This document shows positions 2,284 to 34,154 of a stretch of DNA of 64,000 bases, in pieces. The position numbers were made by a program, and so were the translations under genes. Under the pieces are notes generated by a model. It had not been told where the DNA came from, searched no databases, and saw only the letters and a program-made list of their open reading frames with translations. The DNA lies in sequence record PP695294.1, one strand, 5' to 3'. Every line of letters begins with the position of its first letter. The stretch's first letter is position 1.

Positions 2284-2320
2284 GGAACGTCTCCATATAT
2301 TCGTCTTAAAGACCTGATGG

Positions 2321-2339
2321 TCATACTAAGGATCATACT
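2321..2339 (-). promoter_or_regulatory. Tandem TATG late-promoter-like motifs ahead of the sheath gene
   Basis: Minus strand reads AGTATGATCCTTAGTATGA in the 57-nt divergent gap. TATG is the nvRNAP late promoter core in phiKZ. Confidence 0.45.
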
Positions 2340-2340
2340 C

Positions 2341-3246
2341 ATGGCACTCGAAAACGCTTACAGCGGTAATCCCTTTAATGCACTTGACCTTACTCGCACC
2401 AAGGCAGACCTGGAATTAGCCCGTAAACTTAACCAAACTGTCTCACAGTCCGATGAAGTTCATTACGTTGTTGAGACCGCTGATGTAAAACCGTTTCCTT
2501 TGCCGATTGTTATCGGCGACGACGTTTATGTATACGCAGCCACGTTTACCACGCTGGATAAGACCAACGAGCTAAAAATACGAAACCCAGTCGAACACGC
2601 ATTGCGTCTCGACCAGGCTCGCTGGGAATTGGTGTGGAAACGGAGTAATGGTAAGCTTGCTGCACTGATGGCACAGATGCCCTACCACCATGAGATTTTC
2701 AGCAAATGGGTGTCGGATGCGATTACCCACACGTTTGCACTTGCTCCATATCAAAGTGGGCAAATCAAAGCGTTGGCTGCATTGTTCTCTGTGGGACAGT
2801 TCTATAATCACGTCGAAGATGATGTGAAAGCTTTACGTTTGCAGCAGATGCTGGAGCAACAATTAGGCTTACCTGCGGAACTGTTTGAATCAGTGACAGG
2901 CCACACAGAATATCTTTTCCCGCGTAATATCGCAGAATTCGTCGAAATGGTGCAGGCTGCAGATATCACTCCGCGGGTGCGTGACCTGAGCATTCTGTCT
3001 CTGCAGCAGATGTTGAATACCAGCTTCTTCGGGGTGAGTTATGAAAAACAACTCGCTACTAGCGCCATCGAATATCCGCCTAGTCTCTTCGTTATGATTA
3101 AGGCTTGTCTGGATAATAACATGTTTAACCGCAGTCGGTTAGGTGGGATTGTGAAGAAGTCAGACACCGCTAAGAAACGCGATAAGTTTGAATTCACTTA
3201 CAACCTTCTGTTGAATCAAAACACCAAACCACTGAACATCAAGTAA
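2341..3246 (+). CDS. Conserved virion structural protein (start revised to 2341, 301 aa)
   Basis: AAGGA SD before ATG 2341. The track start at 2179 overlaps the sheath gene. Syntenic with phiKZ gp28. Confidence 0.65.
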   Translation: MALENAYSGNPFNALDLTRTKADLELARKLNQTVSQSDEVHYVVETADVKPFPLPIVIGDDVYVYAATFTTLDKTNELKIRNPVEHALRLDQARWELVWKRSNGKLAALMAQMPYHHEIFSKWVSDAITHTFALAPYQSGQIKALAALFSVGQFYNHVEDDVKALRLQQMLEQQLGLPAELFESVTGHTEYLFPRNIAEFVEMVQAADITPRVRDLSILSLQQMLNTSFFGVSYEKQLATSAIEYPPSLFVMIKACLDNNMFNRSRLGGIVKKSDTAKKRDKFEFTYNLLLNQNTKPLNIK

Positions 3247-3256
3247 GAGGCCCACT

Positions 3257-5770
3257 ATGGAGAACTGGCTGGTCGCTCACGCCGTTAAAAATGCGTGGCA
3301 GCGTCCGTACCTCGATGGGGTGTTGAACATTGCGCCTTTTCGATTAACTGAAAAGACCGGAGCGATCGGGTTTTTCAAGCACGGGCGTAATCCGATTCCT
3401 TTACCGGGCGAGGGGTGGTGGCACGCGTTTGTAATTGACAAGCTCCACCTCAACTACGGCAACTTGAGTATCCCTCCTGAGCGCTGGAAGAAACTTACTA
3501 CGTGTGTAAATAACTTCCATGCGTGGATGCAGGTGTACAACGAAGATGGGACAATTATCCCGTCGAACTCTGTGTATTTCTGGCGGACACTCTCTGGTCA
3601 GATTTACATGGCGATTCCGCAAACGGAACGCTACAAGTGGTTAGACGACACGCCGTGTTATCTGCGCATTTATGCTGGTAATGATGGCGGCGAAAACGCT
3701 CCTGTTGTTAAACCGACGTTCATCGAACCGTATAATCCGCCGAACCCACAACAGATCCAGATCGTCTTAGACCGTTATAATCTGTTGAAAGGCCAGAAAA
3801 TCGGCTATGTCGATTTCTGGGTAAACGGAAAGATGATTGCTGATCCTAAGCCCGCGGATATCAAAGCGTGGGACGATGTTGAAATCCGTGTCGATGGGCG
3901 TATTCGTCGTGTGATTGAATACCGTTGTGGGGATTTGCAAACGTTCTACTCAACGCTTGACCAAACACGAAAATACCTGCTGCACATTCCAAAAGGGGAT
4001 GGCATTTGGATTTTCAACAGCGATTGTGAAATTCAGTTGTTGTGGAAAGGCGAGGGACGTTACTACCATCGCCACCGCCATCTGGCCGTACGACAATTGA
4101 CGTGGAACGATCTATCGATTCCTTCGATGCGGATTTCGAAGTACCGCACCGCGTTCAACACCCCGATGAATGATATCGACGAACTAACGATTCGTTTATT
4201 GATACGCGACGATTTCCTTGACCTGAAGCCGCTGTATAATTCCACCCACACGCATGATCTCTATCGTCTTAGCGACGAGCAAATCATCGGTGCGATGGTG
4301 GGGGCAAACTCCAACGTACCAGAGTGGACCGCAGCAGCGCTCGAAGAATCGGCAGCGAATCGGTTAGCGGCGGCCAAACTCCGGAACATCACGCGCGATC
4401 TTTGCACTGATGCGTACGGCTACAACGCTGCTGCACGTTACAGCGCCGACACACCGCAGCGTCTGGAACTTACCTCTGGCGGTTATCGTGGTATTTTGCC
4501 TGACCTACTGGCAACATTGTCGACTGTATACGAATACGATGCCGATGGGTTGCTGTTAGAGCATCACCGTAATGCAGGCTACGATGTTTACATCCCTCGC
4601 AATCCGGAAGCACGAATCATTGAGGCAATTGCAGGTGAAGTCTCAGATGCGGTGAAGATTGTTGACAACGCTCCCGACTTTGAAATTGAGCCAGGTTCGA
4701 ACGTTGGACTGTGGATTCGAATGGTCATCGGGGAGGTTCCAACTAACGACTACTACAAAGCCGAGGAAGGAACGGATTATACCCGCGACGGAAATAAAAT
4801 CACCTGGACCGTAGATCGGACACGACGTCACCCGACAGTGATTTACGACGACTTCCATCTGTTCTTCGAAGTGGATGTTAAGGTGTCGGAAGGTCAGATA
4901 CGTATTCCGATTGTAGCACGTAACCAAGACGGGCAGCAGCGCACGCTGTGGCTACCGATGGAAACGGTTGAAGTGTGGTTGAACAACCACCCACTGGTGC
5001 ACGGTATCGATTACCACACCCGCTGGCCGGAAATTGTGGTGGTTTGTAAAGCATGGATGGCGGACGGGGATACAAATAAAATCTCAGTGCGTTGTCGTGG
5101 CGTGACCGGTGAACTCCGTATTCCTAAACACGGTTTCGTGTCAAGCGGACTGCTGTCTAATAACAGCCAGTTTGATTGCCGTGACGACAAAGTGATTCGT
5201 GTCGTGGGTGGTGGTTCACTGTTACTGCGTGACGAAGTCGTGTTCCGTGAAGACAACACTGTAGGTGTCGATATCGTACAAGACGGGTTCCCGTACTCAG
5301 TCGACGATCCGACTATTCCGTTACGGACGTTGGTAAGCGGCGATACTTACAAGTTGCGCGACACTGCCCGCGATTTGGACACACGCGTTGAGGCTTATTT
5401 GTCTAACTGGTTCCCAACACCACCGCCGGTTAACCCGGTACCGTTGCCGTATCTGTATCACCTCTATTCGCCAACCCTGAACAAGATCTTGTGGGACTAC
5501 TTACAAGGTATTCTGATTCTACGGGAAGACGATCCGGAGTATCGTATCTCGACGTCACAGCTGGATAACATCATGGAGCGTTATAAAGACCTCCTGCCGT
5601 TTGACCCGGCTTATATCGGTTACGATAAAGCGTTTGTGAAACTGCATCCGCATGTGAAGTACGAAACGGTAGAAATCAACGAACTTGGCTTTGCTTTCTT
5701 AGACCGCGTCAATGAACGTTATCTGAATGGCGAAGTGCAGCTTAATCAGTATCTGATAATCAAGGGTTAA
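3257..5770 (+). CDS. Large virion structural protein (tail/baseplate-associated, phiKZ gp27-like position)
   Basis: 837 aa, GAGG SD, tightly packed in the operon before the terminase. Confidence 0.6.
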   Translation: MENWLVAHAVKNAWQRPYLDGVLNIAPFRLTEKTGAIGFFKHGRNPIPLPGEGWWHAFVIDKLHLNYGNLSIPPERWKKLTTCVNNFHAWMQVYNEDGTIIPSNSVYFWRTLSGQIYMAIPQTERYKWLDDTPCYLRIYAGNDGGENAPVVKPTFIEPYNPPNPQQIQIVLDRYNLLKGQKIGYVDFWVNGKMIADPKPADIKAWDDVEIRVDGRIRRVIEYRCGDLQTFYSTLDQTRKYLLHIPKGDGIWIFNSDCEIQLLWKGEGRYYHRHRHLAVRQLTWNDLSIPSMRISKYRTAFNTPMNDIDELTIRLLIRDDFLDLKPLYNSTHTHDLYRLSDEQIIGAMVGANSNVPEWTAAALEESAANRLAAAKLRNITRDLCTDAYGYNAAARYSADTPQRLELTSGGYRGILPDLLATLSTVYEYDADGLLLEHHRNAGYDVYIPRNPEARIIEAIAGEVSDAVKIVDNAPDFEIEPGSNVGLWIRMVIGEVPTNDYYKAEEGTDYTRDGNKITWTVDRTRRHPTVIYDDFHLFFEVDVKVSEGQIRIPIVARNQDGQQRTLWLPMETVEVWLNNHPLVHGIDYHTRWPEIVVVCKAWMADGDTNKISVRCRGVTGELRIPKHGFVSSGLLSNNSQFDCRDDKVIRVVGGGSLLLRDEVVFREDNTVGVDIVQDGFPYSVDDPTIPLRTLVSGDTYKLRDTARDLDTRVEAYLSNWFPTPPPVNPVPLPYLYHLYSPTLNKILWDYLQGILILREDDPEYRISTSQLDNIMERYKDLLPFDPAYIGYDKAFVKLHPHVKYETVEINELGFAFLDRVNERYLNGEVQLNQYLIIKG

Positions 5771-5772
5771 TC

Positions 5773-7416
5773 ATGGCGAAGATTGCGTCCAAATTAATCG
5801 ACAAGGATCGCGGGTTCGAAGTCTGGGACCCGAGTGAATTGTACGAACCAAACAAACCAACAGGTTACGTACCTAACCCACGCGACCTCATCGTGAACGA
5901 CATGACCTCCGGCTTTGACCGTGTGGTTAGCGTGAACTATTCGGTACCGTCGTGGGAAACAGAACCGTTCGGTGGCGTTGGTGTGGCAAACCAAGACGGG
6001 CGTCTTAATGGTCACTACCCACTACGCTCTGACAGATATCGCGTCTACGTGGACAGCACCAAACTTCCACCGACGATGGTTATCGATGATGCCGTCACTT
6101 TCAACGGTCCCGATATCGACGGTGTGCGTATCCTGCGTGGGTCATCTGTAAACGATGATGCGGAAATCCTGTCTGGTTATTACAAAGACGGGGTTCTGAA
6201 AAAGAACTATCTGCCGGTGCAGACTATCAGTGCGGCTGACGCAGAAACCGTGGTGAAGCAAGCGATTCCTGGGAGCTGCCTGGCCGAAGTCAGTAACGGC
6301 GAAGAGTGTACTTTCCTGGTTTACTCTGACACCGGTAACGTTGTTCAGATCGCCCACGGTCACATCATCAAGACCAATCTGGTGATGGCGCAAGAGACTC
6401 CGTCTCGCACTGTGCTAGGTATTAAACTGGTTTCACCGTTCCTGGTAGACGACAATGGTACTACGCTAACGCTGCCGATTAACATCCCGCTGGAATCTAT
6501 TCCGCTGTGGTGTGACATCCAGTACAGCGACGGAACCAAACGCCTACCTATCGATGGTTCGCGTGTGAAGTTTAACGGTCTGCGTAACTCTGGTGCACAT
6601 GACACGTTTTACATCGCTTCAAATGCCGGTAATGAGTTACCTTGCCAGTTAAGCTATCAGTTGGCTCGCGGTGAAACCTACGGTGGTACTGACATTGTTA
6701 AAGATACAATTGTCAAAGACTACACCGCTGTAACCGAAACAGTCGATGGTGCTTATTCCATGAAGCTGTTTGTGGTTCCGCGTTGGTTGGATGCGAACCG
6801 TGGTTATCGTCTGTCGTTCCTGCTGTACAACCTGACACGCGGCCAAGTCTACGACGCGACCGCAAACATCCAGTACACCACAGGGACTACATTCGACCCA
6901 CTGTTGATGGGTGTGAAACAGCGTCTGAATGTGCAGGTGGATATCAGCAAAGTAAATCCACAATTCCGCGCATTCATCCAGGCGCAGTCTTTCGCCATCA
7001 CGTTAGTGAACCCAGGTAACGAGTTGAATACCAACTTCCTTATCGAATACCTGCCCGATGGGCTGGTCTACGGTAATGAAATTTGGGCGGAGTTCAAATA
7101 CTCTAACGTCAACTACTCCACGCTGAACCTTCGTTGTGGTTGTGCCTCTAAAGCCGAGTGGCTTAAAGCGTTGTACGAGCCGATTTATCCGCTCTACGAT
7201 CGTCGTAATGAATCTGAGGCTCCCGAGCCTACACACTTTGAGGTGCATGTCGGTGGTAAGGTTTACACCCACAGCATCGATGAGTGGTTAAATGAGCAAA
7301 CGGTAGATTATCGTATCGCTCTGGACGATTCGTTAGTTATTCGCTGGATTCGTCGCACTCCTACGGATACGCTTAACCTCGCGGCTACGCCAATGCTGGC
7401 GCACCACATCGAGTAA
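5773..7416 (+). CDS. Virion structural protein (phiKZ gp26-like position)
   Basis: 547-aa beta-rich ORF starting 2 nt after the previous stop; synteny. Confidence 0.6.
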   Translation: MAKIASKLIDKDRGFEVWDPSELYEPNKPTGYVPNPRDLIVNDMTSGFDRVVSVNYSVPSWETEPFGGVGVANQDGRLNGHYPLRSDRYRVYVDSTKLPPTMVIDDAVTFNGPDIDGVRILRGSSVNDDAEILSGYYKDGVLKKNYLPVQTISAADAETVVKQAIPGSCLAEVSNGEECTFLVYSDTGNVVQIAHGHIIKTNLVMAQETPSRTVLGIKLVSPFLVDDNGTTLTLPINIPLESIPLWCDIQYSDGTKRLPIDGSRVKFNGLRNSGAHDTFYIASNAGNELPCQLSYQLARGETYGGTDIVKDTIVKDYTAVTETVDGAYSMKLFVVPRWLDANRGYRLSFLLYNLTRGQVYDATANIQYTTGTTFDPLLMGVKQRLNVQVDISKVNPQFRAFIQAQSFAITLVNPGNELNTNFLIEYLPDGLVYGNEIWAEFKYSNVNYSTLNLRCGCASKAEWLKALYEPIYPLYDRRNESEAPEPTHFEVHVGGKVYTHSIDEWLNEQTVDYRIALDDSLVIRWIRRTPTDTLNLAATPMLAHHIE

Positions 7417-7424
7417 CAAACCTT

Positions 7425-7448
7425 CCTCCACCCCTTCGGGGGTGGAGG
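7425..7448 (+). other. 10-bp GC hairpin with cUUCGg loop and no U-tract, upstream of the terminase
   Basis: CCTCCACCCC-TTCG-GGGGTGGAGG, followed by TATGGAG and the terminase ATG. Confidence 0.7.
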
Positions 7449-7460
7449 TATGGAGATTGT

Positions 7461-9572
7461 ATGATACTGCGAAAAAACGATTGGCGACACTATCCGGGGG
7501 CGATTGTTGACGACGTCACACCAAACGTGCACTTCCTTCAATTCGCCACAACACTACAAGGATTAGGTGTCCAGCATTGGTACGTCCACCTGGCATTACA
7601 CAATCCCGAACTCCGTGGTGTTGATCCGTTTAGCCCGGATTTAACACTCGAACAAAAAGCGATGATTGTTACGGAGTGTGCGGAAAACCCATGGTACTTC
7701 TTCCGTGAATGTGTCCGTGTCCCTGCGGATGGTGTAAAGAACGGGATGCCGTTTCGTCTAGACCGCGGTAACTTTTCGATGTATTGGATTTTCTTCAACA
7801 ACATCGACGCCGCTATCGAGTTTCTCCGTCAGCATGGTAAAACTGTCGGGATGTCCGCATTGCTATTGTGGCTGATGCGCTTCCTGGAGAACTCACGTAC
7901 GATTCTTATCACGAAGGGTCCTGCCCTGCGTGAAGAAACTATCAACAAAATGAAACAACTGCGTAACGCGTTACCGGATTATCTCTGGCCACATCACCCG
8001 GACGATCCTGATAACCGTGAGACATTTGCATGTCTAGCGCAGGGTAACAAACTTATCACCGGCATCGGTCAAAACGATAAGGAAGCTGCGAACGGGGTAG
8101 GCCGTGGACTCACAGCCGGACGCCTGTTCTCGGATGAAGGACCGTTTACCAACAACATCCACCACATCCTCCCTGCTGCACTAGCATCGGGTACCGCGGC
8201 GCGTCGTATTAACGAAGCCGAAGGTGTTCCATACGGCAACGTCTTCGCAACAACGCCTGGGGATTTGGCGACAGAAGAAGGCGAGTACATGTACAGCCTG
8301 ATGACGTCGGGGATTTCGTGGGATGAACGGTATATCGACATTCCGACTCGTGCACAACTGATTGACATGATTCGCAAAGGCTCTACTGCGAAGATTCCAC
8401 GTATCATGTTCTACGTGAAATACAACCACCGCCAACTCGGTACCACGGACGAAGAACTCGCAGATATGATTGCGAACGCCCCAGGTACACCAGACCAAAT
8501 CCGCCGTGACTTCGGTGGTGAATGGACAACCGGTGGTTACAACAAACCGTTCTCAGGCGATGATGCAAGACGTATGAACGCCTCGCGTATTCGGGCAGCA
8601 CAGAAAATTATCTCTGCTTCCAACTACGTAACGGATTGGTATTACACCGAAGAACAGATGCTGGTTAAAATGCAAGACCGCCACATCATCGGTTTGGATA
8701 CTTCCGAAGCCGTGGGACGTGACGCCATTGCCATGTCAATCGTCAACTCTGTCACTGCCGAATATGCCGGCAAGCTCACCGTGAACGAAACAAACGTCAT
8801 CGGGTTTGCGATTCACTTAGCAGACTTCATGATCGAATATCCGAACACGGTACTCATTCTGGAACGACGGTCTACCGGCTCCTCGGTAGCAGATGCCATC
8901 ATACTGCAGCTGCAATCTAAGGTTCGCGATTTGCATCGTCGTTTGTACGTGAAAGTGACCCAGGATTACTCAAGGAACGATGAACTTTACAAAGAGTTCC
9001 ATCGTGGCCCTGTGGGCAGTCCAGAGCGCTTCTGGGACAAATTCCGTAAATACATCGGTTTCTCAACCGACCAGGATAAACGCCGTAAGTTGTATGGTGA
9101 AGTATTTACCACGGCGTTGCGTCTTTCTGCGGACTTACTGCGGTCAGGCGAATTGATCGACCAAATCCTCGGTCTCGTCGAACGAAACGGGCGCATAGAC
9201 CACCGTGCATCCGGTCACGATGACCTGGTAATATCCTGGCTTCTGGCAATGTGGTTACTTCTGTTCGGCAACAACTTAGGCCACTACGGTATAAGTAACA
9301 GCCGACTGATGATGCGCAACCGCAATATGCTCGGGGGCATGGCAGGTGAATTCGATGAAGAGGCTGCAGTCGAGGAAGAAGAAAAGCAACAACAACTGAT
9401 GGGGCAAATTGAAACGATGATTAGACAGAGTCAAGTTGTGGCCGACCCGGTACAACAGCTCATGTACAAGAATCGTATTCAAGCGCTCGTCTCTCAACTC
9501 AACACTGACGTTCGTAACGTCGCATCGATGGAAAGCTTGAAAGAGCTAATCCAACGACAGAGGATGAAGTGA
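7461..9572 (+). CDS. terL: Terminase large subunit
   Basis: 703 aa. Walker A-like RQHGKT, Walker B LFSDEG, RNase H-like nuclease IIGLDTS...GRD and HDDLVIS. Confidence 0.9.
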   Translation: MILRKNDWRHYPGAIVDDVTPNVHFLQFATTLQGLGVQHWYVHLALHNPELRGVDPFSPDLTLEQKAMIVTECAENPWYFFRECVRVPADGVKNGMPFRLDRGNFSMYWIFFNNIDAAIEFLRQHGKTVGMSALLLWLMRFLENSRTILITKGPALREETINKMKQLRNALPDYLWPHHPDDPDNRETFACLAQGNKLITGIGQNDKEAANGVGRGLTAGRLFSDEGPFTNNIHHILPAALASGTAARRINEAEGVPYGNVFATTPGDLATEEGEYMYSLMTSGISWDERYIDIPTRAQLIDMIRKGSTAKIPRIMFYVKYNHRQLGTTDEELADMIANAPGTPDQIRRDFGGEWTTGGYNKPFSGDDARRMNASRIRAAQKIISASNYVTDWYYTEEQMLVKMQDRHIIGLDTSEAVGRDAIAMSIVNSVTAEYAGKLTVNETNVIGFAIHLADFMIEYPNTVLILERRSTGSSVADAIILQLQSKVRDLHRRLYVKVTQDYSRNDELYKEFHRGPVGSPERFWDKFRKYIGFSTDQDKRRKLYGEVFTTALRLSADLLRSGELIDQILGLVERNGRIDHRASGHDDLVISWLLAMWLLLFGNNLGHYGISNSRLMMRNRNMLGGMAGEFDEEAAVEEEEKQQQLMGQIETMIRQSQVVADPVQQLMYKNRIQALVSQLNTDVRNVASMESLKELIQRQRMK

Positions 9573-12470: not shown

Positions 12471-12980
12471 ATGTTTACTGCGCCAACCATGCGGGTGGGG
12501 CAAGGTCTTAACCTGGTGGTACACGACCAGCGGTTAATCGACCTCTGTGACACAAGCATAATTACTGCGATGATGGACCATAACCCTTTAGGTGACTACG
12601 GAAATACCAGCGAGATTTTGGCTGTTGCTGCCGTCCTCCGTCGTATTTACGGTCAAATAACCATCGTAGATCTCTGTAACTTCATTGACAACCACAGAGA
12701 TTTAACTAAAGGGTTGGTCGCACTTACTCAAGATGGTGTGTCAAGTTTTGACAGTTCTCTTGGTAATTTCTTAGACATCGGTTCCGGGTTCGACTCCGGG
12801 TTAATGTTCATCACACGTGAACGCTACGTCGCCGTCTGGGAATTTCTGCAACGCATGGGTGTGCATGTTCCTGCAAAGATCATGCATTACCAAACTTACG
12901 ACCTGAATATTTTCGGGGAGCCAGGGTTATGGATAAAACCAGTACACCTTGGCCTTGATGGCTATACCATCAAGTGTTAA
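12471..12980 (+). CDS. Hypothetical protein (start revised to 12471, 169 aa)
   Basis: AAGGAG SD before ATG 12471; followed by a terminator. Confidence 0.65.
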   Translation: MFTAPTMRVGQGLNLVVHDQRLIDLCDTSIITAMMDHNPLGDYGNTSEILAVAAVLRRIYGQITIVDLCNFIDNHRDLTKGLVALTQDGVSSFDSSLGNFLDIGSGFDSGLMFITRERYVAVWEFLQRMGVHVPAKIMHYQTYDLNIFGEPGLWIKPVHLGLDGYTIKC

Positions 12981-12987
12981 GTCACTA

Positions 12988-13030
12988 GGCGTACTCTCTT
13001 CGGGGAGTACGCCAATCTTATTTTTTTTAT
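12988..13030 (+). terminator. Intrinsic terminator
   Basis: GGCGTACTCTC-TTCG-GGGAGTACGCC plus a long T-tract. Confidence 0.85.
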
Positions 13031-13671
13031 TTTTTTGATTATTTTTTAACCGGCCGGTTAAAGGGGGTCTAGGAGACGTCAGAAAATGATTAAGTGGTCT
13101 GGATGTAGGGTAGCTCGTTTTTGGCAGTTTATCGTTTTCTAGGGTCGGTTACGTGCGTTTTAGAGGGGGTTATGCATCGAGACAGAGAATTTATTTTTGT
13201 CGGGGCGAGGAAATTCAGGGAATGGGGATTCAGGATTGTATGTTTTTTAACCAGTTATTAAAAACGCTCTAGAAAGCGCTAGAACGAGATTTATACCTGA
13301 CCCAGTACACTTGGGTTCCCCCTACCGGAAAATCGCGCCAGCGGGCCGTTGAGAGCGCGAGAGTGCCATTCCCGTTTCGGTTCCGAGGTGACGGTCGCGG
13401 CCGGCGACGACGATCACACGTTGGGTAGCACTTCGTGCCATGTCTGGGTGAAAACTGGATCGTTCTGTAACCGACACACACTGTCGGTTACTTACGAGTT
13501 CTTTGGGTTGTTTAACTCGCTCTAAAATCCCCCTTAGGGGATAATTTAATCTAATTCTCAAAATTTCTTTTTAAAACAATCACTTAGATTGTTTTTTAGA
13601 TTGATCCTGTGGATCGGGTCGAAGACCCTTTCCTTATACGCGTGCGCGTGCGCACACCCGTATCCTCCAGG

Positions 13672-13781
13672 ATCTTTTAAAAGATATATAATAATATTAA
13701 ATATAATAATACCTTTAGGTATTATATTTAATTATTATAATTATTTATATAAATAAATATATTAATATATTAAGATCTTAA
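13672..13781. other. Extremely AT-rich element built from chained palindromes (candidate replication origin / DNA unwinding element)
   Basis: Perfect palindromes at 13672-13685, 13741-13756, 13756-13771 and 13770-13781; hairpin 13706-13725; flanked by ACGCGTGC boxes. Confidence 0.6.
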
Positions 13782-13869
13782 AACGCGTGCAGGCGCGCGC
13801 GTGATCCTTATTAAGAGATCGTGATCGGACGGAAGTCCTAGTTTGGGTACCCTGTGTATTTTTTACGTG

Positions 13870-13997
13870 GTTTCCCTATCGTGTGTTCAGACCACCACAC
13901 GACGTCCAAAACCCATAGCTTCGGTGGCCGCCTCCCTGGACGGCAGACTCTGACAAGTCGACCCACACCACCAACCCGTCCGGGGACGGATTTTTAT
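13870..13997 (+). ncRNA. Putative small structured RNA ending in a terminator
   Basis: Hairpins CGTGTG/CACACG and GCCG/CGGC; terminator CCGTCC/GGACGG plus TTTTT; no credible ORF. Confidence 0.35.
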
Positions 13998-14017
13998 TCC
14001 AACGACAAGCTCCACGA

Positions 14018-14093
14018 AAATCCCCGCAGAGGGACTCACTGCTGTGTGACTCACCGGCTCCTGGACGCCTACGCCTCGAGCCGGTAATTTTTT
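14018..14093 (+). ncRNA. Putative small structured RNA or terminator
   Basis: ACCGGCTC (14053-14060)/GAGCCGGT (14078-14085) stem plus TTTTTT, with small upstream hairpins. Confidence 0.35.
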
Positions 14094-14109
14094 GATTACG
14101 TGAGTTTGT

Positions 14110-14690
14110 TGTTATATGCGAATAGCGATTGACCGCGCCAATGGTCCAATCACTTTTAAACCCTGCACGCTAGGGCTCCAAGTCCTGGGACTGATACCCA
14201 GGACGCTTTTTCGAAAATACCTACCGTGGTGTCTTCGACAAAGCGCAATCTAACACTGCGTGATTTATTATGTTCTGGAAAACTTTCGCCGTGGAACAGA
14301 ACCGGTGAGCGTCGGCGGGGATTCCGACAATCACCACCCATTCAGGTACTCGGTAAATAACCGACCTGCCGACGGTGCTACGTCGGGCGTAGTTCGGTTT
14401 GCGAGAGTGTCGAGAAAGTCGACTGCGCACCCATGACAAAATCCGAGTTGACCGTGGCAGCGCCAGAGGACTGGGCAGCGGAGAGACGTCGTTGAACTTA
14501 CCTCCGATAGTTATCGCTGATTCCGCTCTGGCGTCGGGCCAAAACTGATTCGAATTCGGCGTTGCGTCGAAAAGGGGTCTGCGTGTAGAACCGCAGACTT
14601 GGGGGATAACTCCAAAGTGGGGTGATCGGATCTTGACGGCTCGGAATAGACGAGAGGGGCGGGTACTCCCGTTGAGAAACGACGGTACCT
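14110..14690 (+). ncRNA. Putative large (~580 nt) multi-domain structured ncRNA
   Basis: No SD-supported ORF. Nested helices 14442-14449/14638-14645, 14461-14468/14526-14533, 14182-14189/14197-14204 and 14577-14583/14592-14598. Confidence 0.6.
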
Positions 14691-14698
14691 GGCTGATT

Positions 14699-14707
14699 AA
14701 AATTTAC
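14699..14707 (+). promoter_or_regulatory. AAAATTTAC middle-promoter-like motif
   Basis: 44 nt upstream of the ATG at 14751; recurrent motif. Confidence 0.55.
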
Positions 14708-14750
14708 AGATTCTGCGTGAGGTATGATAAACCAAACGGAGAATTAAACC

Positions 14751-15326
14751 ATGAACTTGTATCGCGTCGGGTTTTACCGAAACGAGATGCCTGAATCGGT
14801 TTTGGTTGTCTTAGCCGAAAACGAGGAGCAGGCCAAATCCTTCTGGCCGGTTAGCGCAGAGCGTCCAGCGGTTGCGTGCTGCTACGACGGCGCTGTGTCT
14901 ACCCCGATGGTTACGCCTGGGGTGGTTCTGAAGCAAGGCCGTTGGGATGATTATTCCCATCCCGGTTTGGAATTTGTTTCCGAATCCGCCAGACACACCT
15001 GGAATCTTACCACGGGTAAAACCAGAGTGTACTTCGGCTACCAAGCCAAGCAACCGTCGATCATCAAGCTGTACCTGGTTTACAGCGACGTCGCTACCGA
15101 AGACTATGTCGACGCCGGAATCATCGTCGGGGCAACAACCCCCGAGGCGGCATTCGCACATTGGGACGGTGATAAACCCGGAATCGTTTCGGTCTGTGAG
15201 CTACCACTTGAAGCCGGTTTGGTTACGAACATCAAGTGTGAGCAAGGCCAGGAGCTGACTTGGATGCGCCAGGATTACCTGACGGAAACGACATTCGAGT
15301 ACACACCGAGGAAGGTGGCCCAATGA
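14751..15326 (+). CDS. Hypothetical protein with two copies of a small domain also found in 16048-16290
   Basis: GGAG SD. Repeats NLYRV...VLVVLAENEEQA and KLYLV...GIIVGATTPEAA. Confidence 0.7.
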   Translation: MNLYRVGFYRNEMPESVLVVLAENEEQAKSFWPVSAERPAVACCYDGAVSTPMVTPGVVLKQGRWDDYSHPGLEFVSESARHTWNLTTGKTRVYFGYQAKQPSIIKLYLVYSDVATEDYVDAGIIVGATTPEAAFAHWDGDKPGIVSVCELPLEAGLVTNIKCEQGQELTWMRQDYLTETTFEYTPRKVAQ

Positions 15327-15814
15327 CGACGATAGCGTTCGATGGAAAAGTCTTAGCTGCTGACGGCCAGTTAACCCGTGGGTCGAATATCTGCAACCTG
15401 AATACCCAGAAGTTATTCGTCTGCCCTTCTGACGAGGAATGGTGGATTACTGGTGAACGGATTGTGGCGTTCGGAGTAAGCGGCGACATCACAGGACAAT
15501 TGGCCCTGCTGGAAACTATCCGCTTGAGACCTGGTTACAAGGGGTTAACGCAAAGCTCGCAGTTACCTGCGAAGATGGATTTTACTTTCCTGATGCTTTT
15601 GGCCTCAGGAAAAGCGATAGTCGGCGGAAAACGTGAAGACGACGTGACGTTGTGGTGGAGTGAAGCCACACCACCTCTGGCAACCGGAAGCGGTTACGAG
15701 TACGCGTTGGGTGCGATGAAGATGGGCGCGAATGCGGTTCGTGCTGTTGAGATTGCGTCCGAATGCGATATCTACACCGGTGGTGAGATTAGCACTTACG
15801 AACTACGGAGGTGA
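15323..15814 (+). CDS. Ntn-hydrolase, HslV/proteasome beta-type threonine peptidase (start revised to 15323, 163 aa)
   Basis: ATGA overlap with the upstream gene. N-terminus M-TTIAFDGKVLAADGQ.T; conserved K in QKL; ATGSG; DIYTGG. Confidence 0.8.
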   Translation: MTTIAFDGKVLAADGQLTRGSNICNLNTQKLFVCPSDEEWWITGERIVAFGVSGDITGQLALLETIRLRPGYKGLTQSSQLPAKMDFTFLMLLASGKAIVGGKREDDVTLWWSEATPPLATGSGYEYALGAMKMGANAVRAVEIASECDIYTGGEISTYELRR

Positions 15815-15907
15815 ATCATGCGGGAGTCAGAAGCACGCAAGCTTGACCCCATCAATCGCCTGCGATAACGGGGTAGCGCATCCGTATAAACACGTTTAAA
15901 GAATTCT

Positions 15908-15983
15908 GGGGGTATGGCGCAATTGGTAGCGCACCGGTCTCCAAAACCGAAGGTTCGAGGTTCGAAACCTCGTGCCCCCGCCA
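15908..15983 (+). tRNA. trnW: tRNA-Trp(CCA)
   Basis: 76-nt cloverleaf: acceptor GGGGGUA/UGCCCCC, anticodon loop CU-CCA-AA, T-loop UUCGAAA, encoded 3' CCA. Confidence 0.93.
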
Positions 15984-16047
15984 CATTTAGCCAACGAATT
16001 CAGGTTCAACACAGAAGACACAGATTTGTCAACTGTTGGAGAACAAC

Positions 16048-16290
16048 ATGAATTTGTACTTGCTAGAACGAACTGACGATATCGGGTATGATGAATTTGA
16101 TTCCATAATCGTGGCGGCTCCTACGGAGCAAGCCGCGTGTGCAATTCCTCCCGACCGTGGTTATTGGATGGACTGCCGCTGGTTACCGAAAGAGCGCTGG
16201 GATGAAGGGCTTACCCTGACCGTTACTCTTATCGGCACTACGCACTATCCTGCTGGGACCGTCGTTCATGAATCGTTCAATGCTGGCTAA
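16048..16290 (+). CDS. Small hypothetical protein (80 aa), paralog of the 14751 domains
   Basis: GGAG SD before ATG 16048; MNLYLL...SIIVAAPTEQAA. Confidence 0.7.
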   Translation: MNLYLLERTDDIGYDEFDSIIVAAPTEQAACAIPPDRGYWMDCRWLPKERWDEGLTLTVTLIGTTHYPAGTVVHESFNAG

Positions 16291-16292
16291 AC

Positions 16293-16310
16293 AGTGGGCT
16301 TCGGCCCACT
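16293..16310 (+). other. cUUCGg hairpin with no U-tract at the start of the ncRNA array
   Basis: AGTGGGC-TTCG-GCCCACT. Confidence 0.6.
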
Positions 16311-16321
16311 AACCCTATTCG

Positions 16322-16470
16322 AGCCATGATACTTACTCAGATTGTGCGGGTTGATGTCCCGCATGAGCCGGTAGCAGCTCAGACCTACGGTAAACCGATA
16401 AATCCGTAGCAGCCAGGTACACAAAGCACCAGGTCGCTTGTACAGGATGCTGGGTATCTGACCGGTCATA
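16322..16470 (+). ncRNA. Putative structured ncRNA A (~150 nt)
   Basis: Helices TGCGGG/CCCGCA, TCAGA/TCTGA (16379/16457), CTACGG/CCGTAG, CAGC/GCTG and CCGGT/ACCGG. Confidence 0.5.
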
Positions 16471-16565
16471 ACCTCATTCGATACGAGACACGTTTATGCA
16501 TGAAATACTCCAGTACATCAGGATGTTGATTTCCAACGTCCGGTTCTGGGTATTCAATCATGTTT

Positions 16566-16687
16566 GGTTTACAGGCGATGGGTTTTCCCGTAAGGGCCCC
16601 ACTTACAGACTGGCGTCTCCACGACAACCGTCCCTAGGGGACAGGCAAGCACCGGCCCATTAAGCCGCCATGCTACGCCTGTAAATC
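16566..16687 (+). ncRNA. Putative structured ncRNA B (~120 nt)
   Basis: Perfect 10-bp closing stem TTTACAGGCG (16568-16577)/CGCCTGTAAA (16676-16685) enclosing CCC-GTAA-GGG, TGGCG/CGCCA and GTCCC/GGGAC. Confidence 0.6.
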
Positions 16688-16691
16688 CACA

Positions 16692-16893
16692 ATCTGATAA
16701 CCGAATGGGATTGAGTTCCCAGTGTTAGGGTGACTGTGTGTCACCGTAGGCGCGGTACCTCATACGGCCGGTACGCCACGAATGTACGTGATAGCGGGTG
16801 GTGCTTGGAGACGCTAAGACCTGACCTTGCGGCCAGGCTCAGAAGAAGAAGTCCATCACCTGCAATCAGAAATGAATTTAGGTTAATTATCGG
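16692..16893 (+). ncRNA. Putative structured ncRNA C (~200 nt)
   Basis: Closing pairing 16694-16702/16881-16893; GGTGAC/GTCACC; 10-bp helix 16794-16803/16854-16863 with G-U pairs. Confidence 0.5.
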
Positions 16894-16934
16894 AAGCGGC
16901 GAAATCGCTTACGTGATAACTTAGTAGTATGCAA

Positions 16935-17320
16935 CGAACAATACCAGAGTGACTTTACGAGGTTACTGTGGTATATGTCGGTGCTCCGGGCAACGTGTTG
17001 CCGCAGATAGGCCCGAGGGAGCTGAGTGCACTAACACACGCCGGGATGCACCGGCACCTTACAATGGGAGCGCTGTCACCATCAGTGATGACAGGAGTGA
17101 AGGATTCGTACCTCACTCGACTGGGCGGAAGCCTGGGCGTTCCCCCATCTTCACATCATGGCCGGCTTGCCGGTTCAACGTTGACGTCTCGTAAGAGATT
17201 TCCAGTCAGGCAACTGATAACACACCTAAGCGTCGACCTTGGACGTATGGTGTCTGGTTAAGTCCCCCGAAACGGAAACCAGTAGGGGTGTGGTACGTTG
17301 AGTGTAACTATCATGATGCC
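16935..17320 (+). ncRNA. Putative structured ncRNA D (~380 nt) directly upstream of a tRNA-like element
   Basis: Back-to-back helices ATACCA/TGGTAT, GGCAAC/GTTGCC, GCCGG/CCGGC, CTGTCA/TGACAG, GAGTGA/TCACTC, GACTGG/CCAGTC, TCTC-GTAA-GAGA and CTGGTT/AACCAG. Confidence 0.6.
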
Positions 17321-17329
17321 ATGAACAAT

Positions 17330-17399
17330 GGCTTTGTAGCTCAGGTAGGTAGAGCAACCTCTTCGAGGAAGGTCGCCGGTTCGAGTCCGGTCAAAGCAA
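17330..17399 (+). ncRNA. tRNA-like RNA with a 13-nt anticodon arm (tRNA mimic or pseudo-tRNA)
   Basis: Canonical U8A9, GCUC/GAGC D-arm, AGGUC variable loop and GCCGG-UUCGAGU-CCGGU T-arm; anticodon arm 4 nt short; G1-A72 mismatch; no CCA. Confidence 0.75.
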
Positions 17400-17476
17400 G
17401 AGCAGCGAAGTTAGAGGAATTAACACCCGACTCATAATCGGATATTTCGCGGGTTCGAATCCCTGCCACTTGCTCG
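17400..17476 (+). tRNA. Degenerate tRNA with CAU anticodon (Met or Ile2; possible pseudogene)
   Basis: Anticodon arm CCCGA-CUCAUAA-UCGGA and T-loop UUCGAAU. T-stem bulged, acceptor stem imperfect, no CCA. Confidence 0.6.
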
Positions 17477-17486
17477 CCCTATGTAA

Positions 17487-17505
17487 ACTCAGATATATTT
17501 TACCT
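17487..17505 (+). promoter_or_regulatory. Variant early (vRNAP) promoter-like motif before the HNH gene
   Basis: CAGATATATTTTACCTAAG resembles AGATATTACCTAAG at 19434. Confidence 0.45.
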
Positions 17506-17538
17506 AAGAGAATAGGTAAACGTATTTGAGAGGTAATA

Positions 17539-18078
17539 ATGAAAGATTTAACCCTACCACCAGGCGACTGGGCACCGTGTCCGGATGCGCCCGATTACTT
17601 CATGGTTTCGAGAAAAGGTGAATTATATTCACTTCGTTCAAACCGTATTGTTTCTCAAAATGTGGTTGGAAATGGGTATTTAGCCCACGTTACAAAAATA
17701 GGCGGAAGGAAAGGTGTTAATGTGGTGCTTAAAACGCACATACAGGTCGCCAAAGCTTTCCACCCTAATCCTGAGAACAAGCCAGAAGTGAACCACAAAA
17801 ACGGTATTAAGTCCTGTAATGAGGACTGGAACGTTGAATGGTCGACGCGACGTGAAAATCACGAACATGCTGTCGAACATGGGCTTTTCTCTTGTATAAA
17901 TGACCATCGTGGTCAACGTTCTCCGAAGATGACTGGAATGGAGATTCGCGAACTCTTAGAAAACCCGAGCGGCAGCCTTAAGCAATGCGCGGAAGAGTAT
18001 AACGTGGATCGTAAAACTATCCAGAACATTCGGAGTAACCCAGCACGTTACTTGTCAATGACATTGACTAAAAAGTAA
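17539..18078 (+). CDS. Free-standing NUMOD4/HNH homing endonuclease
   Basis: Y.VS..G...S N-terminal motif; HIQVAKAF.PNPENKPEVNHKNGIK..N...NVEW.T..EN..HA; C-terminal HTH-like segment; GAGG SD. Confidence 0.9.
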   Translation: MKDLTLPPGDWAPCPDAPDYFMVSRKGELYSLRSNRIVSQNVVGNGYLAHVTKIGGRKGVNVVLKTHIQVAKAFHPNPENKPEVNHKNGIKSCNEDWNVEWSTRRENHEHAVEHGLFSCINDHRGQRSPKMTGMEIRELLENPSGSLKQCAEEYNVDRKTIQNIRSNPARYLSMTLTKK

Positions 18079-18084
18079 CCATCA

Positions 18085-18375
18085 ATTTGTGTTATCCTTA
18101 TCCCGAAGGCATTCGAAATAAGACGCGTATCCACACACGGGTCAAGGATAACACGAACCACTTCCGCGGTCACCGTGTCCATTGCCGCCTACCTGCATGG
18201 GCTGTCCTCCGACACGGTGACTTCGGGCCAACTTACAGGCCAGGGCCGTTTGGGTTTTTCTTACGCATCCATCCAGAGCCACCTCGCGCCCTAGTCTGTA
18301 TACCCCTTTTCTGTTCCTGGTTTGCCAACTAAATCAATTAAGCCTGGTGCGTTGCCCTGGGAACAGAAAACTTAT
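18085..18375 (+). ncRNA. Putative structured ncRNA E (~290 nt)
   Basis: Perfect 11-bp stems 18089-18099/18144-18154 and 18169-18179/18211-18221; 14-bp stem 18307-18320/18357-18370 with G-U pairs. Confidence 0.55.
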
Positions 18376-18458
18376 TCGGTTACACACCGAACCCACCCAC
18401 GAGGGATATGTCGTGGACTACCAATAGAAGCAGCAATAGTAGTAAGAAGGAAAGCAAC

Positions 18459-19280
18459 ATGTTTACAGTTAAACGTGTAATTGATGGTGACCGCATTATT
18501 ACCGAACATGAAAAAGTTCGTATCGGTGACCGTAAGTCTCGTGTATTCCGCGAGGCATTAAAAATGCTCGAGAACGAGCGCTTCGACATCGTTGTCGATG
18601 ATGAAAAGTTAGCCCTTAATCCGGGGTTAAAACGCATTGCCCCTGATGTGCCTGATCCGAACACCATGCTTTTGTCTGATTATTGTAGCTGGTCGCACAG
18701 ATTATATAAAAGTCAGGTTTATGCACACGCGTATTTGCGGCAGCTTTTCCCCAACCTTATTATCCCCGATTTGGAAACGGTCGAGGTGTTTAACTGCAAC
18801 GCACGCGAGTTTATTAGCTACGTGCTAGATAATAAGGGCAACGCTATCTTGGTACTGGCGACAAATTTATGTGAACCAGAAGCCATGGATAGTATCTGCG
18901 GCGAACTCGTTGGTTTCGGTACTCCCCCAGAGAAATTAGGCTGGTACAAACCATCTCCTGATAGCGACATGGCGATCATTGTCTACACTCAGGAAGAACT
19001 GCAACAAGTCGAATTAGAGCCTGGTCCATCTATCGAGTTCACTGGTGTCCAGGAGCAGTCGCAGTGGATTAACGGTGAGTCTGTTGTTACTGTTTTAAAA
19101 GGCGCTCGCCCTGGCGACCGGTCAGTCGATGAACTGATTGGCGCAATGTGCATCGAAGAAGAATCTGGATACGATCCTGATAACCAGATCAGTACCGGTG
19201 CGTTGTACGAACTGTTTTATAAAGGCGACGAAGTCTACGTGGTTAACTCTCACGGTAAGACTACCGACGTCCTTCGCTGA
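18459..19280 (+). CDS. Hypothetical protein (start revised to 18459, 273 aa)
   Basis: AAGGA SD; acidic ORF; followed by a terminator. Confidence 0.7.
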   Translation: MFTVKRVIDGDRIITEHEKVRIGDRKSRVFREALKMLENERFDIVVDDEKLALNPGLKRIAPDVPDPNTMLLSDYCSWSHRLYKSQVYAHAYLRQLFPNLIIPDLETVEVFNCNAREFISYVLDNKGNAILVLATNLCEPEAMDSICGELVGFGTPPEKLGWYKPSPDSDMAIIVYTQEELQQVELEPGPSIEFTGVQEQSQWINGESVVTVLKGARPGDRSVDELIGAMCIEEESGYDPDNQISTGALYELFYKGDEVYVVNSHGKTTDVLR

Positions 19281-32430: not shown

Positions 32431-33798
32431 GTGAGAAAGGTACCAAAATTCTACGGAATATCCGGCCGGTTGGTTAGTCAGGATAACTATTTGTCCGATT
32501 TGCAAATAGAAGCTGCAGCCAAAGGTATTAAACCACCCACTATTATTAACGATGTCGCCGTTAACGGGGATGCGATCGAGGTTGCTGAACTTATCGATCG
32601 CATGGTACAGAACAGAATCGTTGACGAAGAACTGAACTCTGCACCGATTTGTAGTTTGGATTGTCCGGCACCGATCGCGCATCGTTACAATCTCGGTTGT
32701 AAGTGTCCGACGTGTGGCTATGTTGTAACTGAACATCGAATTGAATCCGATGTCTGGTTACGTGCACCTGATGAAATGGGTAACTTCGTCAACCCACGAT
32801 TCTGGGCAATGTTCAATGCTTTCTTTAATAGCAAGTTGAAGAAGTTTGAACGTAACAAGGTCACTATCGAACGTGGTAATGACTTGATGATGTGGATGAT
32901 TGACCCGTATTACCGTATAGAAGAACCAGACGGTAAACGCGCACATGCTGTGAAACGTGTATTGGAAGAACATGGTTTCGTTCGTGGCTTGCGCAATCTG
33001 GTTGATAACCACGTTAGTATCTTTAACATCCTTACCACGCCAGAAGCCTGGAAGGAAATCTTCGCACCTAATCGGCATAACGCCGCTGAAGGTGAACGCT
33101 TACGTTTACAATGGAAGGAGCTATTCGAAACGCAACGTCACGCATTCTTCCCAAGACATTTACCGCTAATCTCCTCTAAACTTATCGTTACTGAGGAAGG
33201 TCGTCGTGGTGTCATGGTAGACCCAGTGTTCACGGGTGCTATTGACGCGGTGAAAAATATCGCGTTGCTCTATACGCGGCGTAAAGCGATCGAACCACGT
33301 TTTCTGATTAGTCGTGCTTTGAAAGCGAACCGTCAGTTAACGTACTTCCACATGGACTTCCGTCGTGAGTCTATGGAAGGTAAACCGGGTGACTATCGTG
33401 CGAAATTGGGTTCTACCCATATCCCGTTCGGTGGTCGTGCAACCATCTCACCTATCTCAGAACCACACGATGCCTGGAAGTTAAAAGCACCATGGCGTTG
33501 GATGGTTGGGTTGATGTCGACCCACATCGAGAACAAACTGCTACGACGGGGTTATTCGTCACGGCAATGTGAGCGTATCGTTGCAAAAGCGGCAATGCAG
33601 TATGACCCGCTTGTAGACGAAATCTTTAAAGAACTGATTCGTGAATCCCCAGGCGGTCTTGGGATCATGGTCATACCGTTACGTAACCCAACGCTGGTAC
33701 AGTTGTCTATTCAAACGCTGTACATCGATGAAGTTGTTACCGATGTTAACCAGTGTTCGCTGCGTATCTCTGACCGTGTGATCAAGATGGCTAACGGT
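32431..33798 (+). CDS. nvRNAP beta-prime N-terminal subunit, exon 1 (phiKZ gp55-like)
   Basis: Zn-ribbon CSLDC...CKCPTC; GKPGDYRAKLG; GGRATISP; LRNPTL; ends ...KMANG at the predicted 5' splice site. Confidence 0.88.
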
Positions 33799-34154
33799 TC
33801 GAAAAGAGCCCCATCGGACGGGAAACCTCTGATGCGTATTCTCCTGAAATGCTGGGAAACCCTAAAGCGTATCTACCAGAAATGGGGACGAAAGTCTGAA
33901 ACAACAGATACGATGGCCTACGCTAAACAATACTGCTAACGGTTGTGATAATGGGTAATCAGCAGCGAAGCCTCGTGAGAGGAACGTTCAACGACTATCG
34001 CTGAAATGCGAGTAGGGGTCCCAGTGGACTTCGAAGTGGGAGAACACCTAAGGCGATAGCTATGGTGAAGATATAGTCTGTGCCTTATCGAGAGATAAGG
34101 AGGGTGTCTTAGCACACCTGCTGTATACGGAAACGGTATACGGTGGACAAACAG
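33799..34154 (+). mobile_element. Group I self-splicing intron, 356 nt, no internal ORF
   Basis: P1 GGUUC-GAAAA-GAGCC with a U-G wobble at 33798; P AAAUGCUGGGAA (33847); Q AAUCAGCAGC (33957); R GUUCAACGACUA (33986); S AAGAUAUAGUC (34068); P3 UUCUCC/GGAGAA; terminal G 34154. Splicing restores MANG-DFDGD in frame. Confidence 0.93.

Follow-up and report, generated by a model that had tools for sequence, protein, structure and literature searches.

Which kind of RNA, if any, fills the gap in front of the tRNA-like genes of Salmonella phage 1252? The stretch of DNA analyzed here (the window; 64,000 nucleotides, nt) is 100% identical to the record of this phage (PP695294.1), an SPN3US-like jumbo phage of the genus Seoulvirus. 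The interval in question, 16926-17329, is located within a 1.25-kb gap devoid of annotated genes or credible open reading frames (ORFs), bounded by a small gp2-like coding sequence ending at 16290 and an ORF at 17539-18078. A preliminary description, made from the sequence itself, had proposed a single helix-dense noncoding RNA. Our follow-up partly confirmed this observation and partly supported its interpretation, the reading as one RNA not being supported: the interval is composed of three separable RNA modules, A, B, and C (Table 1), rather than of one RNA gene, an anatomy that is well supported. We consider it probable that these modules represent the first ~400 nt of a reduced tRNA operon, comprising a leader (A), a tRNA-shaped RNA (B), and a spacer (C). 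The modest but real gain is module B, an uncatalogued (absent from Rfam), covariation-supported family of cloverleaf RNAs occupying a tRNA slot in enterobacterial jumbo phages, joined by module A as a conserved leader and putative promoter of their tRNA arrays.

Module B forms a four-way junction of ~80 nt with its arms in cloverleaf order, as read from alignments. An acceptor-like stem of 8 base pairs (bp; GGGAGCG.../...CGUUCCC) encloses three arms. The first has a stem of 4-5 bp and a loop of 6-10 nt (5 bp and 10 nt in phage 1252), the second consists of 5 bp, a bulged A, and 3 bp under a UUCG cap (a loop of 6 nt in some members), and the third comprises 5-6 bp (6 bp in phage 1252) under an invariant GGAA cap. 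The closing pair of the second arm is converted from A-U to U-A in Machina-type members, and all members share a U at position -1 and a G at +1. Across eight distinct sequences, pairing holds in 96.7% of the cells and double-sided changes are seen in seven pairs, a result equaled by none of 500 shuffles; as a control, sliding the 3' partners by 1-3 columns left only 35-53% pairing. The eight-sequence alignment was fitted to a covariance model built for B (R1), and an independent MAFFT alignment of four sequences agrees with it.

Matches of R1 were obtained in Seoulvirus, in Asesino (Erskinevirus), in Machina, Huxley, and pSal-SNUABM-04 (pSal04; all Machinavirus), and in four metagenome contigs belonging to these phage types. 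Pattern scans for A and B, with exact as well as degenerate DNA motifs (four scans of IMG/VR, plus metagenome contigs and GTDB genomes), retrieved only SPN3US-, Asesino-, and Machina-like phages, all other matches being chance by R1; in the loci from these scans, R1 detected no further B. With the downstream protein as an anchor in IMG/VR, only SPN3US itself was retrieved. The region 17061-17147 is 95% identical in SPAsTU, 91% in Asesino, and 81% in pEa_SNUABM_29 (pEa29), while the flanks reach only 65-77%. Its surroundings are those of a tRNA gene: in Asesino, B stands alone, with gaps of 7 nt to the preceding tRNA-Ile and 10 nt to the following tRNA-His, and in SPAsTU it follows tRNA-Gln by 6 nt.

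Compared with a tRNA, B shows the cloverleaf of four covarying helices, the acceptor-like stem (7-8 bp), tRNA-like linkers including one of 2 nt, a D-arm-like stem (4-5 bp, loop of 6-10 nt), the lack of a gap between the last arm and the 3' strand of the acceptor, the U at -1 and G at +1, and the placement in a tRNA-gene slot. It differs from a tRNA in having a GGAA cap instead of a T-loop (UUCRANY), no GG in the D-loop, and, in place of a 7-nt anticodon loop on a 5-bp stem, an "anticodon" arm of 8-9 bp with a bulged A and the UUCG cap. Rfam was searched by cmscan, at gathering thresholds for the window and at E<=10 for 15800-18600 and 16900-17340; B (17064-17148) matched neither the tRNA model RF00005 nor any other Rfam family at E<=10. 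The complement of the invariant loop of arm 1 gave nine near-matches compared with 3.7 expected, and no exact site outside B. A hammerhead-like interpretation of B, based on the GUGAUGA of arm 1, was rejected, as a G replaces the core C, Machina-type members do not have the motif, and no Rfam match was found.

Machina-type records carry a hypothetical ORF annotated on top of B. In Machina, the B homologue (L042 4635-4710, 47.5 bits) is overlapped by an annotated hypothetical protein, MACHINA_16 (L042 4461-4757); here an RNA gene has probably been mistaken for an ORF. This bears on the idea that the interval encodes small proteins, e.g., from the ORFs 16968-17261 (97 amino acids, aa) and 16949-17194 (81 aa). 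Such ORFs exist, and hypothetical proteins are annotated there in some GenBank records. Yet both depend on GTG starts, neither has a Pfam match, and the 264-nt deletion in SPN3US takes the 3' part and the stop codon of both. Moreover, the homologous Machina ORF overlaps the B structure and the substitutions follow RNA helices, leaving a coding role hardly credible. The noncoding, RNA-level nature initially ascribed to the interval is thereby upheld: it holds no credible ORF or Pfam match, and it is present in RNA sequencing (RNA-seq) contigs.

Is this noncoding sequence one folded RNA? The + strand of 16926-17329 has a minimum free energy (MFE) of -154.8 kcal/mol (z-score -3.4; none of 100 shuffles as good), and the - strand reached a z-score of -2.3. 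The helices noticed at first sight are real, with a signal distributed unevenly among the modules (Table 1); in 150-nt sliding windows, the fold signal of module C cannot be told apart from that of nearby coding sequence. Among the GNRA tetraloops proposed, GGAA (17127) and GUAA (17191) do cap hairpins, whereas GAAA (17269) is part of an 8-nt loop (CCCGAAAC) of the MFE structure and no closed tetraloop; an additional GNRA cap, GCAA, was found at 17210. The multi-way junction thought to be closed by GACTGG (17119) and CCAGTC (17203) received no support. Its closing helix has a pairing probability of 0 and is penalized by +22 kcal/mol when imposed on the fold; eight phage sequences conserve a module B helix with which it would compete, and CCAGTC is missing downstream of B in relatives.

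Further evidence on the architecture is provided by close relatives lacking part of the interval. B and C together constitute a 264-nt insertion/deletion between direct repeats ACAATGG, and 17065-17324, equivalent to two thirds of the proposed single RNA, is missing in SPN3US and in at least seven further phages of >=96% identity; in SPN3US, SEGD1, JN03, EC001, Lh1B, SaP7, and SPLA3, the flanks of the gap are 96-98% identical. SPN3US joins 17064 to 17325, and a wastewater metatranscriptome contains both alleles (joint 17060>17325). The cassette is carried by the SPFM phages as well as by phage 1252; in Proteus phage 7 and in the strains of the RNA-seq data, it is present without the downstream HNH gene. 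In SPAsTU, ACAAT also precedes both B and the tRNA-like gene. Since SPN3US does without the cassette, B and C are dispensable for lytic growth. A group I intron as explanation for the cassette was rejected, because Rfam gave no match and the register with a U before the cassette makes its last nucleotide a U, not a G.

One ornate RNA of ~380-400 nt, extending from the TATG at 16928 to an RNase P-released end at 17329, would explain why the interval as a whole out-folds its shuffles, why contigs run continuously through it in two culture transcriptomes, and why the MFE structure contains a closing helix (16928-16939/17293-17304) in which the only substitution (17302 G>A) keeps pairing. This long-range helix is not conservable, because SPN3US lacks 17065-17324. 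Furthermore, A, B, and C differ in their distributions and are found apart from each other, the z-score originates from A and B taken separately, and the junction helix has a probability of zero and clashes with a conserved arm of B. We therefore judge a single RNA with one global fold to be very improbable.

Module C is the lineage-specific part. It is confined to phages ~98-99% identical over 16900-17345, and its 3' end is set by the 5' end of the tRNA-like gene at 17330. A model of C (R2) found no homologues in 12 related tRNA-array loci, blastn gave no match in E. coli genomes or plasmids and, among phages, only near-identical ones, and a paralogue search within the window found none. The spacer between B and the tRNA-like gene measures ~44 nt in SPAsTU and ~4 nt in pEa29; together with the lack of homologues, these short spacers identify C as a lineage-specific insertion. 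Eight such sequences contain eight variable sites, all structure-neutral, two of which exchange GUAA for GCAA or the reverse with GNRA identity kept; this variation is too low to test the fold.

Module A is also found without B or C, immediately in front of tRNA-Tyr in pEa29 and the Machinavirus phages. The region 15898-17070 is collinear with SPAsTU and pEa29, and the conserved block stops shortly before tRNA-Tyr; in SPAsTU, a 195-nt ORF is annotated between module A and tRNA-Tyr. Only a few nt separate hairpin 2 from the downstream tRNA-Tyr in pEa29, Caitlin, ChrisDB, pEa_SNUABM_4 (pEa4), Machina, and pSal04, and its basal stem shows double-sided changes in 7 of 14 pairs across nine phages. 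Hairpin 1 displays two compensatory pairs between Seoulvirus and Caitlin-type Machinavirus phages with no broken pair in six sequences; it is missing from Machina and pSal04. Hence, the sequence comparison establishes a conserved structured leader of jumbo-phage tRNA arrays, and its use as a promoter may be deduced from the boxes at its 5' side.

The TATG core noted in the preliminary description was confirmed as part of a promoter-like motif at the 5' edge of the interval. TTAC-N15-TATG is conserved in Seoulvirus and Caitlin-type Machinavirus phages; box and spacing of P1 are kept in SPAsTU, pEa29, Caitlin, ChrisDB, and pEa4. The TATG of P2 (16974-16977) begins TATGTCGG, which is invariant in nine distinct phage sequences, and Wellington-type phages have a TATG ~16 nt upstream of tRNA-Tyr. 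In phage phiKZ, late promoters carry TATG with +1 at the G (PMC4666361), and middle promoters carry a TAC(T) motif ~22 nt upstream of the start (PMC8244752). The combination typical for promoters of the phiKZ-type non-virion RNA polymerase, TATG with TAC(T)/TTAC ~22-24 nt upstream, is present here; following the phiKZ rule, the G at 16931 of P1 would be +1, with TTAC ~20 nt before it. Scans of the + strand of the interval gave no sigma-70 promoter and no intrinsic terminator. A third copy of the box, at 14096-14118 (TTACGTGAG...TATATGCGAA), closely resembles P1 and the box of pEa4.

Transcription was evaluated on Logan contigs from two culture transcriptomes (X15 and X16) of a ~97-98% identical strain carrying the cassette and lacking the HNH gene, and from a wastewater run (X18). 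The contigs are continuous over the interval in X15 and X16, with a contig depth of ~2,100-3,300 in X15. Nearby depth in X15 ranges from ~0 (13348-13745) to ~80,000 (15935-16332); given this unevenness, uniform DNA carry-over is unlikely. In X16, one contig ends at 16812 in sequencing adapter, 16813-16919 is uncovered, and the next contig starts at 16920, includes B, C, and both tRNA-like genes, and reaches the downstream gene. The left end of the X18 contig is at 16966. The offset between these left ends (46 nt) equals that between P1 and P2, both ends being located 11 nt before the G of the respective TATG. These ends favor a 5' boundary near the one proposed initially, the exact start rule of phiKZ not being matched.

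Taken together, we propose the following course of events. Transcription of the + strand would begin from a phiKZ-type promoter, either at ~16920-16931 or, with P2 in use, at 16966-16977. Module A would serve as a structured leader, probably released when RNase P cuts the next unit. B is probably the descendant of a tRNA gene that kept cloverleaf layout, acceptor-like stem, and slot, in which a lengthened arm would have exchanged its anticodon loop for a UUCG cap, and the GGAA cap would have taken the place of the T-loop; with both loops replaced, B cannot decode. Like a tRNA, it would probably be cut out of the precursor, U being at -1 and G at +1. C would remain as the segment separating B from the tRNA-like gene at 17330, its 3' end presumably set by RNase P; the 3' edge of the interval does adjoin this gene, as claimed initially, and cleavage there is plausible. 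Finally, B and C may have been gained or lost by recombination between the ACAATGG leaders in front of the individual units; a homing endonuclease gene is part of this array as well.

Several points weigh against this reduced-operon reading. Both contigs begin 11 nt before the G of their TATG, unlike the +1 rule of phiKZ, and contigs are not a mapping of 5' ends; being unstranded assemblies, they define neither the strand nor true 5' and 3' ends. In the deeper run, one contig covers 16688-17195, indicating read-through from upstream, and contigs running into the downstream gene mean that the interval could be part of a long 5' untranslated region (UTR). Boxes of the type TTAC-N14-16-TATG are not enriched across the window (6 found, 5.3 expected), and sequence comparison lends no support to C. 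The RNase P cuts at 17066 and 17330 are presumed ones, and B is devoid of the T-loop/D-loop elbow, which normally aids recognition by RNase P.

Table 1. Positions of the modules, boxes, hairpins, folding signals, and neighboring genes in the window.
Feature	Position	Strand	Description	Fold z-score	Shuffles as good
Module A	16909-17058	+	promoter box and two-hairpin leader		
Promoter-like box P1	16909-16931	+	TTAC 16909-16912, N15, TATG 16928-16931		
Promoter-like box P2	16955-16977	+	second copy of the box, 46 nt downstream of P1, in register		
Leader hairpin 1	16941-16974	+	6 + 8 bp, UACG loop	-5.8	
Leader hairpin 2	16976-17056	+	irregular, 81 nt; base UGUCGG.../...CYGGCA	-3.4	
Direct repeat ACAATGG, left copy	17061-17067	+	right copy 17325-17331		
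Module B	17066-17144	+	four-way junction in cloverleaf order, ~80 nt; covariation	-2.8	
Module C	17148-17329	+	182 nt between B and tRNA-like gene; predicted nested multibranch fold, CUUG/GUAA/GCAA caps		
Folding signal (A)	16931-17064			-4.6	0/200
Folding signal (B)	17064-17148			-2.8	0/200
Folding signal (C)	17148-17329			-1.8	7/200
tRNA-Trp	15908-15980		basis: Rfam		
tRNA-like gene 1	17330-17399	+	Rfam tRNA 40.9 bits; acceptor, D, and T arms intact, anticodon arm shortened		
tRNA-like gene 2, weaker	17402-17474	+	CAT anticodon, Met or Ile2 type; Rfam tRNA 18.7 bits (threshold 29)		
HNH homing endonuclease gene, free-standing	17539-18078	+	Pfam HNH_3 25.3 bits and a weak NUMOD4 match		

The dispensability of the cassette raises the possibility that B and C are decaying tRNA genes and spacer without function, the interval being a long 5' UTR in which only promoter, leader, and downstream genes matter. 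The SPN3US lineage has lost nearly all canonical tRNAs, C is marginally structured and has no homologues, and relaxed ARAGORN settings return a weak Val-like call at 17120-17193, all of which would fit such relics. The conservation of B is difficult to reconcile with decay: it is 91-95% identical between phages whose flanks share 65-77%, its four helices survive seven double-sided pair changes across three genera, and both tetraloop caps are kept. For C, all eight substitutions being structure-neutral points in the same direction, with small numbers. We thus regard loss of function as a possible but unlikely explanation.

As to the role of B after its presumed excision, our best guess is a stable tRNA-shaped RNA occupying or decoying a tRNA-binding factor. 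A stronger version, in which B, partnered in this lineage by C, works as a functional RNA of tRNA shape, passes through hijacked host tRNA processing, binds or decoys a tRNA-recognizing factor, and forms a swappable cassette in jumbo-phage arrays, is speculative and on present evidence unlikely. Candidate targets in that version would be, e.g., a tRNA-targeting defense nuclease or a tRNA-processing or modifying enzyme; if true, phage tRNA genes would conceal RNA effectors of a new class.

The presence/absence polymorphism itself, flanked by a 7-bp direct repeat and with both alleles found in one wastewater sample, would also be expected of a selfish cargo, with B and C spreading by homing-endonuclease-driven gene conversion between co-infecting phages and ACAATGG as recombination or target site. 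An HNH gene is located 210 nt downstream here and another in the pEa29 array, B is much more similar between genera than its flanks, and SegB of T4 drives inheritance of the T4 tRNA region (PMC2330249). Arguing against such mobility, the cassette is unlinked to the HNH gene in Proteus phage 7 and in the RNA-seq strains, and the repeat is the shared 5' leader of each unit, so that a deletion by microhomology explains the data equally well. In addition, B precedes the same tRNA-like gene in both outgroups, SPAsTU and pEa29, which makes the absence in SPN3US look like a deletion, and the SPN3US junction reads ACAACGG, which is not a clean empty site. A mobile cassette is accordingly rated as quite improbable.

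With respect to known RNA classes, the view that the interval is neither RNase P RNA nor transfer-messenger RNA (tmRNA) proved correct; only its overall length is alike. No Rfam match to either was found in the searches described above, and ARAGORN found no tmRNA in the window nor, at relaxed threshold, in 16800-17520. The comparison with known families suggested in the preliminary description thus placed no Rfam family inside the interval, the hits being tRNA outside of it and matches at chance level. GOLLD and ROOL are structured noncoding phage RNAs next to tRNA genes; they gave no Rfam match at E<=10, and the locus differs from them in consisting of three small modules with different distributions, not of one large RNA.

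The closest analogue of B is provided by the species 1 and 2 stable RNAs (rnaC and rnaD) in the tRNA cluster of phage T4. That cluster is transcribed from a middle promoter as a ~1.75-kb transcript giving rise to eight tRNAs and the species I and II stable RNAs, with the homing endonuclease gene segB inside (PMC2330249). Both systems have non-tRNA RNAs in tRNA-type slots (1-6 nt from their neighbors in T4), a slot that B likewise occupies, a homing endonuclease gene in the array, and an array content varying among related phages. T4 produces one precursor from an upstream promoter; here, contigs, which carry no information on ends, strand, or sizes, start at 16920 and take in B, C, and the tRNA-like genes. 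No homology to T4 was detected, R1 with filters off reaching at most 9.4 bits in the T4 cluster and nothing significant on rnaC or rnaD. T4 rnaC has a canonical T arm (GGGUUCGAAUCCC) where B has the GGAA cap, the T4 RNAs measure 119 and 139 nt compared with 80 nt for B and 182 nt for C, and T4 relies on the host RNA polymerase, while SPN3US-like phages presumably use phiKZ-type phage polymerases. B would be a second, independent example of what the T4 species 1 and 2 RNAs represent.

For module A, a counterpart is found in 201phi2-1, in which a small RNA (sRNA) derived from a 5' UTR sits just upstream of a tRNA, its tRNA-Leu being expressed from a middle promoter (PMC11512511). Like the leader sRNA of this phage (and of PAK_P3), A is a short structured RNA adjoining a phage tRNA. 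The 201phi2-1 sRNA was defined by premature termination in long-read data, whereas A has no terminator after hairpin 2 and its release by RNase P would be the corresponding step.

The same locus in relatives of four genera (Seoulvirus, Machinavirus, Erskinevirus, and Wellingtonvirus) contains tRNA arrays that begin with tRNA-Tyr, end with tRNA-Asn, and differ in content and spacer length. Nearly all canonical tRNAs kept there by relatives are gone in the SPN3US group. Within one genus, the locus thereby documents the stepwise shrinkage of a tRNA array from ~7 tRNAs in SPAsTU to two tRNA-like remnants in SPN3US. The first of these is Glu(ttc)-like in relaxed ARAGORN and is annotated as tRNA-OTHER in SPN3US and as tRNA-Asp in Proteus phage 7. 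The second is called Met(cat) at the same setting and aligns with pEa29 tRNA-Ile2(cat) and Caitlin tRNA-Met. Annotations of phage tRNA arrays usually list, besides the tRNAs, just "spacers" or small ORFs that are spurious; in the present case, one such spacer contains a conserved RNA family that is probably tRNA-derived. The natural variants, SPN3US without and phage 1252 and the SPFM phages with the cassette, facilitate functional testing.

At the end of the array, the insertion carrying the HNH gene covers 17483-18084 in full. It is missing from SPN3US and Proteus phage 7 and from the RNA-seq strains (joints 17462/17479>18085), and in phage MET_P1_082_240 a tRNA-Asn is located at the insertion site. 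In pEa29, an HNH-related ORF directly follows tRNA-Tyr. GenBank records of SPFM phages matching by BLAST in ~20 pieces and scrambled in 60-nt blocks were excluded from the alignments. In LR535901 and other SPFM records (e.g., L038), these ~20 pieces of 60 nt occur in reversed order relative to the window, and the deposited sequences appear to be scrambled line by line near the record ends.

Upstream of the interval, 16635-16858 (wider, 16291-16812) is the most widely conserved noncoding segment of the locus, with 66-80% identity in Seoulvirus, Machinavirus, Erskinevirus, and Wellingtonvirus. As the X16 contig end at 16812 in adapter indicates a defined RNA end, this segment looks like a separate upstream RNA (a 3' UTR of gp2 or a noncoding RNA of its own) and not part of the interval. 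Further upstream, 15935-16332 reaches a depth of ~70,000-80,000 in X15 compared with 2,000-8,000 in neighboring bins, and many short adapter-capped contigs have their ends within 15999-16116. A short RNA of very high abundance is therefore suggested directly 3' of tRNA-Trp, where the gp2-like gene begins.

A second long noncoding stretch, 12981-14750 (1.77 kb), is accompanied by fold z-scores of -5 to -8 at 12850-13100 and of -3 to -5 at 13450-13850 and 14000-14300. Almost no RNA-seq depth was recorded at 13348-13745, and two runs have an adapter-capped contig end at 13900, a third run one at 13908. The adjacent 191-aa ORF at 14751-15322 is missing from the X15/X16 strain (joint 14750>15323), representing another presence/absence segment. 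Beyond the array, a noncoding stretch of ~320 nt (18085-18407) is 66-99% identical in SPN3US, SPAsTU, pEa29, Caitlin, and Asesino, with moderate fold z-scores of -2.5 to -3.2 at 18100-18300. Elsewhere in the window, a group I intron occupies 33779-34100, the Rfam model Intron_gpI being matched over its full length at 69.4 bits.

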